Origin: Neoechinorhynchus agilis
Lineage: Eukaryota; Animalia; Acanthocephala
Assembly: GCA_051530055.1 (NCBI GenBank)
Contig: CM121342.1
Location: 282,797 to 346,796, forward strand
Length of the DNA: 64,000 bases
Reading direction: 5' to 3'
The notes beneath the pieces were generated by a model that worked only from the letters and a program-made list of their open reading frames with translations, was not told the origin of the DNA and searched no databases. Shown here in pieces: positions 321-49,550 of this stretch. Numbering within the stretch: the stretch's first letter is position 1; each line of letters begins with the position of its first letter. Position numbers and translations under genes: made by a program.

Positions 321-516
321 ATTTGAAAAATACGGCCTAGAGTTTATTTATCTGCCCAGCTTTCGCCGTTTTACGGCTTCAATTGGACAATTGTTAAAGT
401 GTTTTATTCGCGTTTAAATGTCAAAAATAAAACACTTTAACAATTGTCCAATTGAAGCCGTAAAACGGCGAAAGCTGGGCAAAAAATAAATAAACTCTAG
501 GTCGTATTTGTCAAAT
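321..516. repeat. Foldback palindrome whose arms are eroded hammerhead modules
   Basis: Arms of about 85-90 bp around a short loop. The right arm reads TGTC CAATTGAA GCCG taaaa CGGC GAAA GC TG GGCA..AATAAA (445-490), the same geometry as the PLE hammerhead at 11927-11965 but with a mutated core. Mirrored at about 5625-5820. Confidence 0.85.
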
Positions 517-2447: not shown

Positions 2448-3761
<1,314 letters not shown>

Positions 3762-4226
3762 GGAGATTTCGTAGCTAAATGGAGAATGAGTTTTAAGTTT
3801 TGAGGGGGGGGATTTAAAAGTGTAACAAACATTTTATGAGTAAGTCTTTGGGTACGTGAAAAAATGAGTTCAACGATTTAAGTTAAATAAAAGGAATCTC
3901 ATTCAATCTATCGAAGATCATTCGCGGGTGTAGTTGATAAATAACCGCAAAATAATAACATGTCTAACCAACGAGAATGCCACCCTGAACGAAATAAAAA
4001 CATTGATTTCAACACAATGCAATTTGAAGACGTTTAGCGATGAAGATGAAGGACATAAATTAAGTGCTTTTCTTACAAAAATGGCACCTTAACAAAAATC
4101 GCGGTTGTAATTTCGCGGTAGACGGAATCCACTGTCAACACAAAAACAGGAAAGAACGGAATACAAAATAAGAAATCCGTCTTATTGTTATTTAAGTGAA
4201 AGTCGATGGAGGTACTCTTCAACCAC

Positions 4227-4959
4227 TGTAAAGAAATTATTCATTATAGTTTCAGTTTCAATTAGCGATGTTTAATTCAGAAAAATATATTTATCTTGAA
4301 AATTTTCGGTCTTTTCGTTGGACTTCTTCAGTCAATTGATTGTAAGTTTTTAAATATCCGACAAAAACTGACTGAAGAAGGCCAACGAAAAGGCCGAAAA
4401 TTTTCAAGATAAATCTATTTTCTAAAATAAACATCGCTACTTGAAACTGAAACTAAAAGTATACATTGTAAAGAAATTATTCATTATAGTTTCAGTTTCA
4501 ATTAGCGATGTTTGATTCAGAAAAATAGATTTATCTTGAAAATTTTCGGTCTTTTCGTTGGTCTTTTCTTTAGTCAATTGATTGTAAGTTTTTAAATATC
4601 CGACAAAAACTGACTGAAGAAGGCCAACGAAAAGGCCGAAAATTTTCAAGATAAATCTATTTTCTAAAATAAACATCGCTACTTGAAACTGAAACTAAAA
4701 GTATACATTGTAAAGAAATTATTCATTATAGTTTCAGTTTCAATTAGCGATGTTTGATTCAGAAAAATTGATTTATCTTGAAAATTTTCGGCCTTTTCGT
4801 TGGCTTTCTTCAGTCAATTGTGTTGCAAGTTTGTCACTTCAGCGTCAACGTACGAAACAATTGACTGAAGAATACCAACGAAGAAGCAGAAAATTTTCAA
4901 GATAAATCTATTTTCTGAATCAAACATCGCTAATTGAAACTCTCCAACCATTGTAAAGA
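4227..4959. repeat. Tandem array of three ~240-bp palindromic units, each arm carrying a hammerhead-like core
   Basis: Units start at 4227, 4467 and 4709. Each is a hairpin with arms of about 88 bp. Plus-strand cores at 4369-4406 and 4611-4648 read TGA CTGAAGA A GGCC aacgaaaa GGCC GAAA AT TT TCA. A near-intact minus-strand core lies at 4778-4817. Confidence 0.9.
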
Positions 4960-5430
4960 TGTTATCTATAGATTGTTGTTTTCCATCAGACGAATTAAAG
5001 AAAATAAGTAATTCTGAAGAAATCCCACGCGCGTAGAGGGCAAAATATTAAAATAAAATTATTTTCTTCAAACGTTTCGGATAATCGTGAATATGAAGAA
5101 AATATTTAACTAGCGTCTAAAATGAAGATTTAATGTTTTAATTGGATTTGGAGCAATCATATTCCGCCCCTCGCCCCGGTTAAAACACATATTTTTTAGT
5201 TATATTTCGTAAGAAAAAGCCTCACCTCATCCTTCATTGGTTTTTCAATTCAATAAAAATTCTCTCACGTTTAATAAAGACAAAAAAAAGTATTTACAAA
5301 CATTCACACCACCGCCCTGGATCACTCAGCTGCCATCCTGGTGTAACGGTCGAAAGGACGGATGCAGCGTTTCCCCGTGTTTTGTAGGAGGAATGCTCCT
5401 GATCTCGAATCTTCAGTGATTCGTCGGCGC

Positions 5431-6139
5431 GAATACCATTGTTCTGCATTTTGATTTTCCAAATGGGCTAAAGACGTTCTCACTTGTATATAATTTTCGT
5501 CCTAAATAAAACTTGAGTATTCAGCATACCTTGATGATGACGAGGTTTTCGTGAAAAATACAAATAAACCTCAGTTCTTAAAATATGAGCTTTGCATATA
5601 TTCTTATCCTTAATTTTAATTTAATTTGACAAATACGACCTAGAGTTTATTTATTTTTTGCCCAGCTTTCGCCGTTTTACGGCTTCAATTGGACAATTGT
5701 TAAAGTGTTTTATTTTTGACATTTAAACGCGAATAAAACACTTTAACAATTGTCCAATTGAAGCCGTAAAACGGCGAAAGCTGGGCAGATAAATAAACTC
5801 TAGGCCGTATTTTTCAAATTAAAATTGAGACATGGGCCTGGAAAATCAAGTAGCGATTCACGCTATTATAATATATTTTTATCCATTAAATGGAAATGGT
5901 TATTAACTGTGCATCGTAAAAACAGAAAAGTAATCAAATCAAAATGTCGATATGTGAGGATTTAGAAGTATTCATTCTGTAAATGATTATTTATTAGAGA
6001 CGTTTCGAACCTCATCGGGTTCATCATCAATTCTAAAAAAACGAGAGGTGAAATGACTGATGATGAACTCCGACGAAGTTCAAAACATATTTAATAAAGA
6101 ATATTTACCGGGTAAAGACTTCTAAATAACACTTCTAGT
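5431..6139. repeat. Right arm of the long inverted repeat
   Basis: Reverse complement of 1-709. Includes the first codons of the 190-aa ORF, the foldback and the hammerhead-like modules. Confidence 0.95.
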
Positions 6140-11039: not shown

Positions 11040-11980
11040 GATTGATTCTTTTTACGCCATCGAAAGCCATGCAGGAAGTCGATTGTGATGCACCGAGATT
11101 CTCACCATCCTTGGGCGATGAAAGCGGCGATATACGCTGGTATGCATAAATCGGCAACCACCTGCTCATCGTCGTGGGACGCGAAGCGTGGAGCGGTGGA
11201 AGCAGTAAACAAGATCTTCGCGGACAACGGATATTCGACAGAGGAGATCGAAGGATTCCAGCGAGAAGTGGAAAATAGAATTAGACGAGACGCTGGACCC
11301 ATGAGGGAACGAAAGGACGATAGGCCGATCCTACGAATTCCGTACGTGAGTGAAATGTTCACGAAGAGAGTTAAAGTACTGCTCAGGCAAGCAGGGTTGA
11401 ATGTGCGTATTGTGCACAGAGGGTGTAGAACGCTGCGGAGGATGCTGACGAGAACGAGGCATCATGAGGATCATCAGGAATGCCCTCGGTCGTGCCTAAT
11501 GTGCAGATACGCAGCAGGTGCGAGGATGGACGAGGAGCGTCAGCAAGCCATTGATCGTGACTGGAAGATGTGCGATCAGAGCAGTGTGGTCTACGAGATC
11601 CGGTGTGAACGGTGTCGGATTGACCGTGGCCACTTGGTCACGTACGTGGGAAAAACAGAAAGGCCACTTCGCCAAAGAGTGGCCGAGCATGTACGAAACT
11701 CCTTGATCCACCCGGATGGAACAGTTCAGCTGTCCACGCGCATAATGTACAAAGCGCAGGATCCCGTCGAACTGTCGATAGCGGAAGCGCTGATCATATC
11801 CCGAGAGACCCGGGATCGTGAGGACTCTAGCGGGCATCGGTCGGTAGGACACTCATTAACCAGAAGGATGAGTTGTCTGCCGTCATGAATCTCATGTGAA
11901 ACTCCACTCCACTCGCATTGTAGATTACACCCTGAAGAAGCCGTTGGACGGCGAAAGCTAGGTGTTTCAATAAAAGCTCT
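11040..11980 (+). mobile_element. Penelope-like element, 5'-truncated (thumb/linker + GIY-YIG) with 3' hammerhead
   Basis: ORF 11085-11888: HRDSHHPWAMK, LRIPYV, VYEIRCERC, YVGKTERPLRQRVAEH. Confidence 0.9.
11927..11965 (+). ncRNA. Minimal type I hammerhead ribozyme (PLE-type)
   Basis: ACACC CTGAAGA A GCCG ttgga CGGC GAAA GC TA GGTGT: 5-bp stem I, 4-bp stem II, palindromic AGCT stem III, intact core, with AATAAA shortly downstream. Confidence 0.9.
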
Positions 11981-12129
11981 TTCAGTCGGATTGTCAATCA
12001 AACAATCATCAATAGATAAAACATGCGGCTGAACAACCAAGCAGCGCTTAGTAATCTTAGTAATCAGATTAGTTTGATATATATTTAAACTTTCCTATTT
12101 TTTTTGTTGTGCGCATCAAATTCCAAGAA

Positions 12130-12560
12130 ACATTCTTATTACTTAATATTTCGTGGACAAAATCCACCTCTTCAGACATCTACAAGATTGGTTTGTCGGG
12201 TCTTCTTTTTGCAAAAACCAGCCTGTTAGAAAAGGGACGACATTGGCTGCTTTCTGCAAAAAGAACACGGCGAAAATACCTACATGCGGAGTCTACGAAA
12301 TAGGATGTTCGGAATGTGATAAAAAGTATATTGGACAGACGAAGCAAGGTCTGAGCAAACGCATCCAACAGCACAAATACGTGCATAGGCGTTTTGATCG
12401 ATCTTCTGCAATATTGAACCACGAGCGTTAAGGAAATGAAAGCAATGGAAAATCGAATATTAAAACCGAAGTTGATGCAGGTTGAAATCGAATTCTTCAG
12501 AATATCGAATTTCCCAGTTCTTAAGATCACAACGGAGCTGACTTGGCATAAAGGTAAACT
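12130..12560 (+). mobile_element. Second PLE GIY-YIG fragment
   Basis: CGVYEIGCSECDKKYIGQTKQGLSKRIQQH, with stops downstream. Confidence 0.85.
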
Positions 12561-19965: not shown

Positions 19966-20188
19966 TTTTTATTAGATCCTTTAAAATAAACGTTTATTGA
20001 GATTTTTCTTTGATTTAGAGAAAATATCCCGCGAAGGTTTTAAATTCGATGATCCGCCATGCTTTCTATCCTAGACTAACTTTGCAATTACGAACCGCAG
20101 TTTTAAGAAAAGCTTCCCATTAGTTAAAAGTGTTGAAAAGATAATTCATTGTTATTTGTTGATAGGAGAGATAAATAAGATTAAGATT

Positions 20189-20230
20189 TTATTGGATATT
20201 TCGATCCACTATCTCGGATCTTCTTCAGCG
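20189..20230 (-). ncRNA. Hammerhead-like motif, inverted copy
   Basis: Reverse complement of 22038-22079. Confidence 0.7.
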
Positions 20231-20657
20231 ATCTAAAACACATATAACAGGGATTCTCAATTCACACGTCACATAACATCCGGTAGGAGTCGCATCCTTA
20301 ATTTGAAATTATTGCCCTCGAACGTTTCGAACCTATTTATATATAAGGATTCGATGATAATACGTTCGAAACGCCGACCATTGCAAACTAGTGTTGTAGC
20401 GGCACTAAAATCAATAGTGTGACCTGTGTTTTTTGCATGGGCCACCACTGCGGAACTAATATCCGTGTTGCGAACAACTGATGATTTGTGCTCCTTCATC
20501 CGTCGGGTGAAATTGTTGGTCTGCCCCACATAGACCTGTTCACAACCGGAGCACGGAATTTTAGAGACCGCACCAGATGACTGTTGGCCATTCTTGGGAC
20601 ATATCAATCCGTGTAGAGTGCATCCCCTCTTTGTGTATACATTTACTCTCTTGGCCT

Positions 20658-20791
20658 TGTGGCGGCGACTTCCACGTAATGACGGGCAGCCGGAAGAAGT
20701 TTCCTTTCCCCGAATGAAAGCAGGGACAACAAGCATTCACCACAATGTAAAGATAATAAACTTAATCTTCTTCTTACGTGACGCCGCCAAA
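20658..20791 (+). mobile_element. 134-bp solo-LTR-like insertion in the left PLE arm
   Basis: Absent from the right arm. GCCT duplicated at 20654-20657 and 20792-20795. Ends TGTGGCGGCG / CGCCGCCAAA, with an internal AATAAA. Confidence 0.7.
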
Positions 20792-22037
20792 GCCTCACAT
20801 CCTGATTTTATGATGCGCTCCATAGCAAAATAAGAATGATCATCAGGGAATGGCAGTTCAACGTAGATCTCTTCCTTTTTTTGACTTTGTCTCCCCACTC
20901 TCGCAGTTCCTCTCCTGTCTACGAACACTGAATGGAATTTAACTAATAGTGACTGGCGAATGCTATTGCAGTTTTGCACCAGATTCTGCAACTTCCAGTT
21001 CAACGGCATCGACTATGACCAGAAAGATGGAGTAGCCATGGGCAGCCCGTTAGCCCCTGTGCTTGCTGAGCTGTATATGCGGCACTGGAAGGACGAACAT
21101 TCGCCGCCGATACAGGGGGTTAATATCTGGTTCAGATATGTGGACGACACGTTCCTGTTGATCGACCCTTCAGAGACTAATATGAATTGCCTTAAACATG
21201 AACTAAATGGAAGGGACGACAATATTCAGTGGACGATCGAGGAGGAGGACCATGGTAAGTTTCCGTTCCTGGATGTGTGGATATACCGATTAGCCAGTGG
21301 AAACTCCACGACCAGCGTGTACCGAAAGAGAGGTATACCAGTGGGCCTTGTGCCATGGACATCAGCCCAACCTCGCAAATACAAAAAATTTCGAGGATTA
21401 GGTCACTCATCCACCGTGTTCTTACACATTGTAGCAACGCCAAGTTGTGTAACGAGGAGATTGGTTACCTAAAGTACATATCAGGTCTCCATCTTGTCGA
21501 ACCTTCAATGGGGAGACAAAGTCAAAAAAAGGAAGAGATCTACGTTGAACTGCCATTCCCTGATGATCATTCTTATCTTGCTATGGAGCGCATCATAAAA
21601 TCAGGATGTGAGGCCAAGAGAGTAAATGTATACACAAAGAGGGGATGCACTCTACACGGATTGATATGTCCCAAGAATGGCCAACAGTCATCTGGTGCGG
21701 TCTCCAAAATTCCGTGCTCCGGTTGCGAACAGGTCTATGTGGGCAGACCAACAATTTCACCCGACGGATGAAGGAGCACAAATCATCAGTTGTTCGCAAC
21801 ACGGATATTAGTTCCGCAGTGGTGGCCCATGCAAAAAACACAGGGCACACTGTTGATTTTAGTGCCGCTACAACACTAGTTTGCAATGGTCGGCGTTTCG
21901 AACGTATTATCATCGAATCCTTATATATAAATAGGTTCGAAACGTTCGAGGGCAATAATTTCAAATTAAGGATGCGACTCCCACCGGATGTTATGTGACG
22001 TGTGAATTGAGAATCCCTGTTATATGTGTTTTAGATC

Positions 22038-22079
22038 GCTGAAGAAGATCCGAGATAGTGGATCGAAATATCCAATAAA
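22038..22079 (+). ncRNA. Minimal hammerhead-like motif at the PLE 3' end
   Basis: CTGAAGA A GATCC gagatagt GGATC GAAA TA TC C AATAAA. Core intact, ATAT palindromic stem III, stem I weak. Confidence 0.7.
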
Positions 22080-22593
22080 ATCTTAATCTTATTTATCTCT
22101 CCTATCAACAAAAAATTAGTTAAAAGTTTTTTATAAAGTGTTGTCTAAGACTAAGCAATAAATAACATGATAGATCGTTCACGCCGCCAGACTTATGTTT
22201 TGTAGGAGGAATGTTCCTACAGTCGGATGGCAAGTGATTCGTCTGATTCTCTCGGACAATTGCTTGACCATGGCCTACGCCGCGTTACCAAAGGACCCGA
22301 GTGACTCGACGCCTGGTCATTACATTTCCCTCCCTAAAATGCATCAATGCACCGTTAACTTTTATTAGAAAAGCGAGTGAAAGTATTTGTTACTATTTTG
22401 TTTTCTTAATCTTAAATCTTACACGATTTGTGACTTCTAAATTCACTATGGATCTCGTGTTAGCCTGTGTTTAAATATTTGTAACCGTCCTCGAAGCGAA
22501 AGTGAAAGTGTGACGCACCAATTGCTCACGATATTTAAAAACAAAACTTTCATCATTTGAAAGAAGTCACCAATCCTCATTTCATTTTCACCG

Positions 22594-40200: not shown

Positions 40201-40879
40201 CGGTTAAAGTTCGTTTGCTAAGAATTGCACCTTTTGAGTGACAGGTTCGACCTAATATACTTCACGCGGAAGATTGGAGCTAACGAATTCCTTTAGACTG
40301 GACAGGCAATCGTGGTTCATCAAGTAAACTCTTAAGATTCCGCCATAGTAGGTAACATGGTCGATTCATTTGACATCGTCGTTTTTGAATGAACGCGCCC
40401 ATGGAGCAACGCTATGTTCAATATAAATCAATTTTCTGAGTGAATATCGCTAGGTGAAATTAAATCACTTCTTTAGGCATTATCAGGCTCGATTTAATAG
40501 TGAGGATGTGAGGTCATCTGTTGTTTGGATAAACAAAGTATCCATGCTGAAATCCGATTGAAGATGTCGACTGTTGAGGAATTCTTTATTATTTATAATC
40601 CTCCAACAGGAGCTGATAGCTTGGGTTGCTCTTGAGTTGGAGTGCCCGCTGTGGTTTCCCACTCGCTGACTACGGGCCATATAATCGATTTTAACGACGC
40701 ATATGTGTCGGTACGCAATAGGGAGCAAATACTTTCGAGGGAAACAAGACCGATTTTTTCCCTAAAGTCGAGGATACCTCCTAATAAGACAATGAGGTTG
40801 CCGAATTCCTTTTTAGATACCTGACTGAAGAAGTCCAGTGTGATTGGACGAAATATTTCAATTATTCTTTGATATAATC

Positions 40880-44317: not shown

Positions 44318-47296
44318 TGTTGTGGTAGCTGGCATCAGTAGATCCAAAAATCTACTGTCGCCGCACAAAAATGGTTTTTTCAACATAACACGGAAAACGT
44401 TAAAGGAATACCGAAACGGGCTATCCATTGGCTGATAAGTGCTCTTGCACACATGACGGCGTCGGTATTATTTAAAGGAATCGCCTCGGGCCATCGAGTA
44501 TATCGGTCTATCACGGTTAATAAATGAGTGAAACCTTGTGATGCCGGTAGCGGACCTACTAAATCTATATGGATGTGATCAAATCGACGTTGCGGAGGTT
44601 CGAAAGTAGAAAGCGGTGCTCGTATGCGTCTTTGAACCTTAGCCTTTTGACATCCGATGCATGACTGAACCCAGGCACCAACATCCTTTGATAAACCAGG
44701 CCAAACGTATCTTGTTTTAACCAATTTACGGGTTGCTTTGATTCCAGGGTGAGGCAGCTGGTGTACAGCCTCGAAAACTCGTTTCGTCCAAGATATTGGT
44801 ACCAACGGTCTATAACGGCCAGTCGAAATGTCACACAAAATAGTTTGTCCTGTGCCGTTGAAAGGAATTTCTTTCAACTGTAGCGAGGTATTCGCTGAAC
44901 GATATGCCTGGATGTGTTGATCAGACTTTTGATCTTCTGCCATCGCTTCAAACGATATTCCTTCGGAAATACTGGCTAAATAATCAATGCGGAACAATGC
45001 ATCGGCAACTTGGTTGTTTTGTCCACTAATGTGTTCGATATTGGTCGTGAACTCAGATATGTAATTCAAGTGTCGTTGTTGACGGGCTGACCAAGGATCC
45101 GAAACTTTTGACATCGCATAAACTAAAGGTCGATGATCAGTGTTAATCGTAAACGATCGGCTCGACGTAATATCGAAAATGTCGGACAGCGAGATACATG
45201 GCCAGAAGCTCGCGATCGAAGGTGCTGTATCGTTGTTCAGGTTTACGCAGTTGTTTGCTGAAGAATGCCAGCAACTGCCATGAATCGGACACTTTCTGCT
45301 GTAGAACAGCGCTAATAGTGAACTCGGATGCATCTGTACTGATAGAGATTGGTGCGTCGGTCACTGAATGTGAAAGCATCGTTGCGTTTGCTAGAGCGGC
45401 TTCAGTTTTTTCGAATGCTGAAGCCATTTCAACTGTCCAAGAAAAACTTCGTAGATTTGTTTTACCTGAAAGCGCTTGGTAGAGCGCACGCATCAGACGG
45501 GCTGCCGAAGGGATGAAATGATGATAATAATTTACCATACCAACAAATCCTTGCAAAGCTTTGGTGGATGTTGGATGAGGGAAATTGCGAATCGCACCTA
45601 CTTTATCTGGCAATGGTACTGTACCCCGTCCACTTACACGGTGTCCTAGGAAATCGAACTGTTCTACCCCGAACTCACACTTATCTGGGTTCAGAATGAG
45701 GCCGTACTCTGAGAGTCGATCGAACAATGTTCGTAGGTGTTTCCTGTGCTCGGATCGATTTGAACTCGCGATCAGTATATCATGGAAGTAGACGGAACAA
45801 ACCGTATCCATTAACCACTAGAATGTTTGTGCAGCATTTTTCAACCCGAAAGGCATACGAAGAAATTCAAAAGGCCAAAAGGCGTAATAATCGCAGTTTT
45901 TGATGTCTTGTTCCGCCACCCGAATTTGATGATACCCTCGGACGAGGTCTAAATTCGAGAAAATCGTTTTTCCAGCGAGTTTAGCTGAAAAATCTTGCAT
46001 TCGAGGAATCGGATATCTGTCGGGCGTTGGGATATCTTTAGCCTGCGATAATCGCCACAAGGACGCCATCAACCGCCTGATTTGAGTACGAGATGCAACG
46101 GAGACGACCACTGCCTATTTGGGCGTCTAATGATTCCAAGATCCTCCATATTTTTGAATTCGGATTTAGTAATAGCGAGTTTATCGGGCGGGAGAGGTAG
46201 CCGTCTAGCATGGAGTGGTTGTCCTTGTGTCTCAATAATTTGCTCCACTGCATGTTTGGTCGAAACGTTCGAAAAGGTAGGTCTCGTTATATCGGGGAAA
46301 TCTGCGAGAATTTTACTAAATTCGTTGTTCTTAGATCCGAGGAAATCGACGCTGAGGGCTTCGATCGACACAGGAACGGAGACGAATGGTGTCATTGCGA
46401 AAGTTTCTGCACTAACCAGCTACTTATTGCTTACATCGACGAGTAAACCTGAGTGTCGAAGGAAATCAGCGCCTAGGATAGGGTGTTTAACCGCGGCAAG
46501 AGTTAACATCCATTCCGTCTGAGTTGTACAGAAATTCATCTGCAGTAGCGTGTTGCCGAATGTTGGAATTGTTGAACCGTTTGCAGCTGTAAGTGCTCTG
46601 CCAGAGTGTTTGGTCTGCTTATCGAGTGTTGTGGCTGGAAGGACGCTGACTTCGGCACCAGTATTGACTATGAACCGTCGTCCAGTTTGGCGTTCGTTTA
46701 GGAGAAAGATGCTATTGACAGAGGGACCGATCATCATTGCCTCTACTAATGATCGGTCAATTCGTTTTTTGGGTTGGCTTTCAATTTGAAATCCGGCGAT
46801 CGCTTACAAGGTGATCTTCATTTCCTTGAAATCCGATACTGTTACTAGGATTTGCCTGGTCGCAATCTTTTTCTTGATTGAGGACGCTAAAGGCTGCCTT
46901 GATTGCCAAATGTTGTCGGCAGCGCGTGCAAGCTCACGAGGTTCGGTTATTTTTTAATGAACTAGAATAGATCGGATCTCCTCAGGCATGCGTTCAAGAA
47001 ATATTTCGCGGAATAAGAAACATAGTGGGTTGCTTTCGAGGTACGCTAGCATCTCATCCATTAACGCCGTAGGCTTTTCGTCTCCAAGCTCGCTTATGTG
47101 AAGGATTCGATTTGCCCTCTCACCTGGGGGAGCTTCAGAGAAACGGTATTCAAGTTGCTATTCGCTTCTACTGTCGAACCACGGTCGACAGCGTCGGGGT
47201 CACCAATTGTTGTGGTAGCTGGCATCAGTAGAGCGAAAAATCTACTGTCGCCGCACAAAAATGGTTTTTTGCAACATAGCACGGAAAACGTTAACA
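44318..47296 (-). mobile_element. Ty3/gypsy element with about 89-bp LTRs and a tRNA-Trp-type PBS; integrase truncated
   Basis: LTRs at 47208-47296 and 44318-44403. PBS TGGTGACCCCGACG at 47205-47192. VNTGAEVS protease, [52 protein letters not shown]. Ends at ARFGIP. Confidence 0.93.
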
Positions 47297-48109: not shown

Positions 48110-49550
48110 TGGGATTCATGTAGCACGGCTCTCGGAAACAAGACGCGAAGACCTCGGCCAAAGCAAGCTCATGTCCTTCGATTTCAAAAGTTTGTATACG
48201 AACGTTGATAATGAAGCCGTGATCATTACACTAGAAAAAAGGTTGCTCGAAGAAGAAACTCAAATCAATTTATTTGGTATGAAACCGGACGATATTGTTA
48301 TGCTGACGAGACAAGTGCTAACGTGCAACCTTTTTCAATACAATAACCAGTTATATAGGAAAGTCCGTGGCCTCGCAATGGGTAACAGCCTTGCTCCAGT
48401 GTTAGCCTGTTTATATCTAGATGGTCTGGAACGGCAGCGCATCTTTCCACAGTTATCGTCGAGTCAAATTTACCTCCGATACGTGGATGATGTGTTGTTT
48501 TCTTACCGGAAGGATAGTGAGGTTGACACTGTTGAGCGGAATCTGAACTCAATGGATCCTGAGGGAAACATTGAGGTTACTAGAGAACAACCACATGACT
48601 ACCTACCGTTCCTCAACATGATCTTCAGAGTAGACGAACCATCTCAAAGAGCTTGGTATAGGAAGTTATGTAAAAAGGACATTGTCCTACATCGGGTCTC
48701 ACATCACCCATGGGCGATTAAGCAGGCGATTAAGCAGGCGATTCTAGGAGGCATGTTGAGAAATGCTAGATTATGCTCGACAACTAGACAGAGCAGATTA
48801 GATGCAGAGGAACGGATCCGAGGTATTTTCGCAAGCAACGGATATTATACACAAGAAATAGACCGGATGATTGACAGGGTAAACAACCGACGAAATCGAA
48901 ACGATCGTTTTATCGATTTACCACCGTTGAGAATCCCGTATATATCCGAAGATTTCACATGGAACGTGAAGCGAATACTTTTGGAATGCCACGTCAGAGC
49001 TCGGGTTGTGTATATAACCGGTCCTTCCTTAAGAAAACTTCTGATGAGGACTAATCACCACGAGGATCAGGAGAATTGTCCAAAAAAGTGCATTATGTGC
49101 ACTCAATGTCAATTAGACAATGAAGATGGAAGACGAAGACCGAAGGCAGCTTGTATGATGAGCAACGTACTATACCGGATCACATGCGGCAATTGCAAGG
49201 ACCAGAGGAAATCCTGCAGCTACATTGGAAAGACGGAGCGGAGGCTACACCAGCGGGTAACTGAGCATTTTGGTAATGCATGTAACCCGCACGCACCGTC
49301 GTACGCGTCAGCACTGTTGGCCACCCATTTTGCTAACCACCACAATAATGTTAGCCCAGCCTTGGGGGGTGGGGGTTCTCTACAGGGCATCTGATACTGT
49401 AGACCTTTCCATGGTTCGGGGGCACCAACTGATGGGTCACTCAATCTTAAGGATGAATTGTCAGACGGTTTATCTCTTTTCTGACCTTTCAGAGTGATGG
49501 ATAATCCCCGAAGAAGCCGTGAAGCGGCGAAAATTCGGACAAAATAAAAC
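48110..49550 (+). mobile_element. Penelope-like element, 5'-truncated RT + GIY-YIG
   Basis: ORF 48171-49394: MSFDFKSLYTNV, GLAMGNSLAP, RYVDD, LPFLNM, LRIPYI, YRITCGNC, YIGKTERRLHQRVTEH. Confidence 0.95.
49505..49548 (+). ncRNA. Minimal hammerhead-like motif (U4 to C variant) plus AATAAA
   Basis: TCC CCGAAGA A GCCG tgaag CGGC GAAA AT TC GGA, then AATAAA at 49543-49548. Confidence 0.75.

Follow-up and report, generated by a model that had tools for sequence, protein, structure and literature searches.

The stretch of DNA studied here raises the question of whether a short palindromic array that carries hammerhead ribozyme motifs on both of its strands is a working, self-processing RNA element or the residue of something else. 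The stretch, which we call the window, consists of 64,000 nucleotides (nt) from the acanthocephalan Neoechinorhynchus agilis (assembly GCA_051530055.1, contig CM121342.1, forward-strand positions 282,797 to 346,796), and the array occupies positions 4227-4959 of it, upstream of the GALE gene. An earlier note, made from the letters of the sequence, had described a palindromic tandem array with six hammerhead cores on alternating strands and had proposed that transcripts of either strand process themselves in the manner of a retrozyme. Our analysis leads to another answer, which we hold to be quite probable, namely that the array is a decayed cluster of head-to-head tails of Penelope-like elements (PLEs) in which a local duplication took place recently. 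Besides the window itself we used DNA (one run) and RNA (three runs) of this organism in the form of assembled contigs, in which rare circular forms are lost and the ends of RNA molecules are invisible, and the DNA run possibly comes from the same sample as the assembly.

Tandem Repeats Finder gives one array at 4227-4941 with a period of 242 bp, 2.9 copies and 92% matches. Taken together with the repeat families and the inverted pairs of the window, this places the whole array at 4227-4959, and it comprises 2.9 units, each 242 bp long, followed by ~25 nt from the beginning of unit four, a 17-nt start of which is seen at 4949-4965. The palindromic tandem architecture with its six alternating cores is thereby confirmed. 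Within each 242-bp unit two arms of ~94 nt form an inverted repeat, the complementarity of the arms is 88-95% across the array, and the arms follow one another in the order minus1, plus1, minus2, plus2, minus3 and plus3. The arms at 4244-4337 (minus) and 4366-4458 (plus) are 90-93% complementary and are separated by a 28-nt head-to-head spacer, spacer A (4338-4365, recurring at 4580-4607), where the 5'-truncated ends of the arms meet. A differing 40-nt version of it, spacer A', was recognised at 4820-4855 by sequence comparison and is covered by an exact DNA contig over 4792-4915. The tail-to-tail spacer, spacer B, is 25 nt long (4459-4483) and recurs at 4701-4725. When read from 5' to 3', an arm consists of 3-6 nt, then the hammerhead-like motif and then a tail of ~60 nt, and the arms point away from spacer A.

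The segments 4324-4561 and 4566-4803 are 99% identical, and this shows that a structure of two units has recently grown to three by a tandem duplication of 242 bp. Units 1 and 2 are 99% identical, the plus1 and plus2 arms are 100% identical over the whole arm, and minus2, judged by the limits of the repeat family, is the junction copy of the duplication. Two variants of the tail are present, alpha in plus1 and plus2 and beta in the other four arms, and over 31 nt the beta tail of plus3 and those of the minus arms complement each other fully (100%). The presence of alpha and beta tails indicates that at least two source copies contributed to the array.

When the six cores were examined with a strict RNAmotif-style descriptor, which asks for both core boxes, the bulged base, the G10.1-C11.1 pair, UH, a helix III that is palindromic and minimum lengths of 4 bp for stem II and 3 bp for helix I, two of them were found to be intact minimal type-I hammerheads. 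These are plus1 at 4369-4406 and plus2 at 4611-4648, both on the plus strand, with predicted cleavage after 4403 and 4645, respectively. Their sequence is UGA / CUGAAGA / A / GGCC-8 nt-GGCC / GAA A-AU-U / U / UCA, which provides both catalytic boxes, the bulged A, the G10.1-C11.1 pair, a UU|U cleavage triplet, a helix I of 3 bp (UGA/UCA) and a helix III that consists of one pair with the palindromic loop AAUU. The earlier note was right that these cores are complete and had placed their cleavage sites correctly, but plus1 and plus2 are 100% identical products of one recent duplication and are therefore to be counted once. Damage is seen in all four remaining cores. In minus3 (4778-4818, minus strand), which had been described as near-complete, the TTGA/TCAA helix I and a stem II of 3 bp are indeed present, but comparison with the published feature list (PMC4209133) reveals an A.C mismatch in place of the conserved 10.1-11.1 pair. 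By sequence inspection and folding, minus1 (4296-4336, minus strand) is a remnant that has kept the core boxes and only two of four pairs in stem II (GUCC/GACC), and plus3 (4862-4899, plus strand) is a remnant with stem II destroyed (TACC / AGCA). In the minus2 remnant (4536-4578, minus strand) inspection shows the first box, CUGANGA, broken to CTAAAGAAA and stem II broken too. There are no compensating changes for the damage in any of these four.

With the exception of minus2, then, the CUGANGA and GAAA boxes are kept in five of the six arms, and the AAUU palindrome of helix III is present in all six, whereas the bulged base together with a stem II having G10.1-C11.1 is found in plus1 and plus2 only. 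Helix I is 3 bp long in the plus arms and 4 bp long in the minus arms and is open, there being no loop 1. The assignment of the motifs to the PLE type of minimal hammerhead with a palindromic stem III is supported for the array. The arms are 86-94% alike, and counted against plus1 there are 3-7 changes within the ribozyme part (41 nt) and 4-6 within the tail (42 nt). Since changes are equally frequent in the two parts, there is no sign of purifying selection on the ribozyme.

The motif itself is not a chance string. The strict descriptor found four sites in the window (4372, 4614, 11932 and 40825) and none in 300 first-order randomisations of the window, and a looser scan gave further copies at 12175 (minus), 20228 (minus), 22039 (plus) and 49508 (plus), the last with C in place of U4. 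Among the copies in the window helix I occurs as UGA/UCA, UCC/GGA and ACACC/GGUGU, stem II as GGCC, GCCG, GUCCA, GAUCC and GUGGA, each with its complement, and helix III as AAUU, AGCU or AUAU. This covariation of the helices shows that the genome does contain such a motif class and that the plus cores of the array are members of it. The Rfam hammerhead models (RF00163 and clan CL00010) gave no match to the array, neither at the gathering threshold, with the whole window searched, nor at E<=10, with 1 kb or 66 nt searched. However, the related copy at 40825, used as a control, scored only 13.4 bits (E=1.1) on Hammerhead_1, and therefore the Rfam models are insensitive to this variant and the test is uninformative. 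Plant microRNA-precursor models of Rfam were drawn by the long hairpins, far below threshold, and were rejected as meaningless hairpin matches.

How the arms relate to PLEs can be judged from two other places in the window. The open reading frame (ORF) at 48171-49394 (407 aa) carries a YVDD reverse-transcriptase motif and a Cys-rich/GIY-YIG endonuclease region and is a PLE. About 115 nt past its stop is the hammerhead at 49508, which has the array-like layout, CCGAAGA as its first box and covarying, intact helices I and II, and which is followed by AAAATAAAACATCGTACT, a string that by eye matches the 18-nt tail motif of the array at 4424-4441 with two indels. The other place is 20152-22115, where two 5'-truncated PLE copies with reverse-transcriptase (YVDD) and GIY-YIG ORFs stand head-to-head. 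Their arms are 98-99% complementary, and they have identical hammerheads at 20228 (minus) and 22039 (plus) that face outward, ~75 nt from each end. Judged from its sequence, this pair is the architecture of the array with a longer body, and it lends stronger support to a PLE origin than the 49.5-kb end does. On ancestry from PLE ends the earlier note is supported. A solo decayed copy of the array tail, ~80% identical, was found by BLAST against the window at 40414-40459 (E ~1e-5), with no intact hammerhead upstream of it. It has been reported that a typical PLE insertion has partial tandems and an adjoining inverted 5'-truncated copy with variable target duplications (Craig et al. 2021, PMC8557442) and that minimal hammerheads also occur in pairs, on opposite strands and at distances of 100-700 bp, which are ascribed to truncated PLEs (Cervera & de la Pena 2014, PMC4209133). 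The earlier note knew of no description of the palindromic arrangement, but with these opposite-strand pairs and these inverted and tandem truncated insertions its components had already been published.

The DNA contigs separate what belongs to the family from what belongs to this locus. DNA word depth is 121.5 in the single-copy flanks, while the summed word depth, which according to the tool's own warning does not equal copy number, is 9,900-96,500 across the array with its peak at 4315-4415, and this shows that the arms belong to a high-copy family. An exact contig over the tail-to-tail junction (4397-4494), however, has a word depth of 398, which is ~3x single copy, and the exact contig of spacer A' (4792-4915) has a depth of 75.5, which is at the single-copy level. 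Thus the 242-bp unit itself is local, and a genome-wide family built on its junction is not supported by a DNA contig depth of only ~3x. Other DNA contigs show opposite-strand joints 4303/4892, 4522/4838 and 4545/4765 and several skips, and these joints are near single-copy depth. The consensus of four DNA contigs (agreement 0.81) reads ...TTGTAGAT upstream of 4368 and not spacer A, from which it follows that at this locus the arms have been truncated immediately 5' of the ribozyme. By their sequence, the variable joints elsewhere look like independent retro-insertions with variable 5' truncation.

A probable explanation of these observations is that the arms are extremely 5'-truncated 3' ends of one PLE family, ~100-120 bp each, which would contain the minimal hammerhead and the 3' terminal sequence and which we infer to have arisen by retrotransposition. 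Such tails would have been joined head-to-head, which is the usual pattern of PLE insertion, and tail-to-tail. At least two source variants, with alpha and beta tails, would have inserted before the duplication, and the recent 242-bp tandem duplication would then have taken two units to three and yielded the two identical intact cores. The order of events appears to be established only to this extent, at least two source variants and then one recent duplication. The hammerheads would be inherited cargo, mostly decayed, and no working part of the locus, and transcripts of either strand, in which a core is made straight after its own complement, would fold into hairpins with stems of ~95 bp.

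As in the minimal hammerheads of PLEs (PMC4209133), there are CUGANGA and GAAA boxes and a G10.1-C11.1 pair, the base that precedes stem II is unpaired, helix III is a single pair with a palindromic loop, helix I is short and open, the motif probably lies near a PLE 3' end, and the published cases likewise include opposite-strand pairs 100-700 bp apart and are mostly truncated copies. Helix II, however, is 4 bp here and 7-8 bp in the Schistosoma families, helix I is 3-4 bp here and 4-5 bp in those families, and in the array the opposite-strand pair is repeated in tandem and there is one distinct intact core, present twice. The array shares with complex PLE insertions (Evgen'ev & Arkhipova 2005; PMC8557442) the 5'-truncated copies, the inverted copy joined head-to-head, the tandem arrangement and, as a candidate, a target duplication, which in those insertions is of variable length. 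It differs from them in that the truncation is extreme, leaving no ORF and only the hammerhead and ~60 nt of tail, and in that not every step was an insertion, at least one being an ordinary tandem duplication of 242 bp.

Whether the cores could act as ribozymes at this locus was addressed by folding with nearest-neighbour energies, which take no account of proteins, tertiary contacts or the kinetics of folding during transcription. From one plus cleavage site to the next the RNA is 242 nt long, and it is predicted to form two long stems at -107.6 kcal/mol, compared to -38 +/- 3.9 for shuffles (z = -17.8), so that the expectation of long hairpins voiced in the earlier note is borne out by calculation. 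Since spacer A is the centre of the inversion and the core is at the inner (5') end of its arm, the antisense core is transcribed before the sense core; in either direction the order in the transcript is antisense tail, antisense core, a loop of 15-40 nt and sense core. For 4227-4415 the minimum free energy is -74.8 kcal/mol and the best fold reaches only -21.9 when the hammerhead helices are enforced, which is a penalty of +52.9 kcal/mol, and for two units the enforced hammerhead fold costs +57.5 kcal/mol. For neither RNA does stem II form in the ensemble (probability 0). In the isolated segment 4340-4415, stem II folds and the 3-bp helix I does not. According to these calculations the cores would be sequestered in the hairpin by >50 kcal/mol, and the hairpin would outcompete the ribozyme fold; such sequestration had itself been named in advance as an outcome that would speak against self-processing. 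It has been shown that monomers of minimal PLE hammerheads have no detectable cleavage in vitro and that dimers and trimers cleave weakly and mostly at non-physiological Mg2+ (PMC4209133). It seems likely, then, that there is no cleavage at this locus. Selection for an RNA hairpin was considered as well and is unsupported, since the mismatches of the paired arms show no strand bias in wobble pairing (six are wobble-compatible on one strand, six on the other and 11 on neither).

Several observations weigh against a decayed cluster of PLE tails. With the window as the only DNA open to BLAST search for matching PLE ends, the array arms gave no match to the 49.5-kb PLE end at E<=1, so that of the likeness to this end claimed in the earlier note the layout and the 18-nt tail motif stand, by eye, and a sequence match does not, and within these 64 kb no complete PLE was found whose 3' end matches closely. 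The omissions of the energy model belong here too. Finally, the array is flanked by an 18-nt direct repeat, CTTCAACCACTGTAAAGA at 4217-4234 and CTCCAACCATTGTAAAGA at 4941-4958, both on the plus strand, which could be a target-site duplication as far as its sequence goes and which misfits a simple single insertion, as only 11 of its letters are found again at the internal junctions. The two copies match at 16 of 18 positions, and of the 10 nt beyond the periodic unit 8 agree, which in a fixed register we estimate to occur by chance about 1 time in 1000. An 11-nt direct repeat, CAYTGTAAAGA, is present at each unit boundary. The last 8-11 nt of the flanking repeat recur at the internal junctions and contigs of other loci reach ~4461-4470, and therefore part of it may be element tail.

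The locus is also transcribed at its left edge, as part of GALE. This gene is on the minus strand, its epimerase domain lies within 2914-3525 and its start codon is at 3761, which puts the left edge of the array 466 nt upstream, in accord with the ~470 bp given previously. Spliced RNA contigs of the minus strand reach 4255/4256 in three RNA runs and define a 5' leader at 3746-4256, and the introns seen in them are 3519-3567, 3691-3745 and the optional 3775-3830, all of them CT..AC on the plus strand. The leader contigs run 30 nt into the array, unbroken, and then stop where an assembler would break at the repeat. That spliced GALE mRNA contigs enter the left edge of the array is a new detail. 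Past the array (5022-5223) the RNA depth is 0-5.6, compared to 131.8 for the X2 leader contig, which suggests that leaders start within the array. The depth of the long leader compared to that of the coding region was 10.4 to 553 in X4 and 131.8 to 538 in X2, and by contig depth the long leader was carried by ~2% of GALE mRNA in X4 and ~25% in X2; the mean depth of the X3 leader contig was 610 with the coding region included. Hence, the long leader, which contains 7 upstream ATGs and is carried by a variable fraction of the mRNAs, probably begins inside the array.

A C-to-A change found in the minus1 arm alone makes a TATA-like string, ATAAATATATTT, at 4283-4292 on the minus strand. It lies ~30 nt upstream of the point at 4256 where the leader contigs stop, and this may be coincidence, as the contigs end there at the repeat anyway.

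An active bidirectional retrozyme-like repeat, in which transcripts of either strand are cut by dimeric minimal hammerheads into ~242-nt units, rods or circles, would have in its favour that the two intact plus cores are exactly one unit apart, that their palindromic helix III suits dimers, that the unit folds as a rod and has a size found among animal retrozymes (170-400 nt; PMC7229834), and that family-level RNA contigs exist for the arms. We nevertheless regard it as very unlikely, and the claim of self-processing is a part of the earlier note that is not supported. Both intact cores are one core copied in the 99%-identical duplication, the four others are damaged without compensation, the ribozyme part has no excess conservation, and helix I has merely 3-4 bp. 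The cores are calculated to be sequestered by >50 kcal/mol with their complement transcribed first, and minimal PLE hammerheads cleave poorly even as dimers (PMC4209133). The unit junction has only ~3x depth and is local. The contigs of the three RNA runs contain no back-joints of the kind that would mark circles, which is weak evidence as contigs miss rare forms, and the sole joints in RNA contigs at the locus are the GALE introns. The comparison with animal non-LTR (long terminal repeat) retrozymes (Cervera & de la Pena 2020, PMC7229834; Li et al. 2026, bioRxiv 10.64898/2026.07.22.740005) goes the same way. These too are tandem repeats of a few hundred bp, AT-rich and non-coding, with a type-I hammerhead per unit, derived from PLE pseudo-LTR sequence, and the array has non-coding tandem units of 242 bp with one intact plus core each in units 1 and 2. 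Retrozymes, however, have canonical hammerheads with loop-loop contacts, one polarity and abundant circles, whereas the array has the minimal variant without loop 1, palindromic units with cores on both strands, a unit without a genome-wide family and no circular joints seen. We likewise give very little credence to the broader idea that palindromic tandem hammerhead units are a distinct, recurrent class of product here, be it ambisense 'foldback retrozymes' or the outcome of rolling-hairpin reverse transcription of PLE tails, with RNAs processed from either strand. The ambisense hammerhead arm of the Avsunviroidae and the retroviroid-like DNA repeats resemble the array in that a quasi-palindromic stem pairs the plus hammerhead with the complement of the minus hammerhead. 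Viroid hammerheads, though, are intact and active in both polarities, and viroids replicate RNA-to-RNA.

That the locus has been exapted, the PLE-tail palindromes serving as an alternative start or leader of GALE or as a source of hairpin RNA for small RNAs against the PLE family, is in our judgement unlikely, although the spliced leader contigs of three RNA runs, the low RNA depth past the array and the long, near-perfect duplexes of the stems all fit it. The long leader is variable and mostly a minor form, its 7 upstream ATGs look more like noise than design, every leader contig stops at the start of the repeat, and the arm mismatches are without strand-specific wobble bias. We find it highly improbable that the array is a tandemly amplified foldback DNA transposon, similar to a miniature inverted-repeat transposable element (MITE), in which the hammerhead-like strings are incidental. 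The units are palindromic, CAYTGTAAAGA recurs at each unit boundary and there is another foldback element in the window (348-486, 5654-5792), but the inverted repeat stops short of the unit ends, where the outer 8-12 nt differ, and the MITE reading was rejected because the inverted repeat is not terminal. Moreover, the inner breakpoints at other loci are variable, as 5' truncation in retro-insertion predicts, the motif fits the covarying PLE hammerhead class and is absent from randomised sequence, and the coding PLE pair in the window shares the architecture. Least credible of all is an assembly artefact, that is a collapsed or chimeric palindromic repeat. Tandem and inverted PLE insertions are known to trouble assemblies (PMC8557442), and the junction depth of 398, ~3.3x single copy as against two assembled copies, indicates that the real array may be one unit longer. 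However, DNA contigs with zero differences, from a run that may share its sample with the assembly, cover the left boundary (2800-4254), the tail-to-tail junction (4397-4494), spacer A' (4792-4915) and the right boundary (4922-5308).

Some features of the neighbourhood were observed in addition. GALE and the array are held in the 4.7-kb spacer of an inverted duplication of 713 nt (1-713 and 5427-6139), which is 99% complementary and runs off the start of the window, and the depth of its arms, ~2x, fits two real copies. The foldback elements at 348-486 and 5654-5792 lie one in each 713-nt arm, and each has a degenerate hammerhead-like string. A very high-copy repeat at 5224-5425, with a summed DNA word depth of up to 218,000 compared to 121.5 and abundant in RNA contigs, has a common core at ~5301-5371 and CTGAAGA ... 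GAAA strings on the minus strand. The intact minimal hammerhead at 40825-40862, with helix I UGA/UCA and helix III AUAU, is ~400 nt downstream of the solo tail copy. At 11932-12175 there are two convergent minimal hammerheads of unlike sequence, ~190 nt apart and with no inverted repeat between them, and these are probably two unrelated PLE tails. On the minus strand at 44380-45811, several fragments of ORFs, in which domains of reverse transcriptase, RNase H and integrase are recognised, look like a broken LTR-retrotransposon pol.

Read as a decayed cluster of PLE tails, the array would be a further case of PLEs scattering truncated, head-to-head ends with minimal hammerheads in an invertebrate genome and thereby seeding small tandem arrays. 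It also calls for caution, in that intact-looking ribozyme cores in palindromic repeats can be duplicates of one survivor and can be thermodynamically locked. Finally, a housekeeping gene, GALE, with an alternative leader that enters such an array may deserve follow-up.

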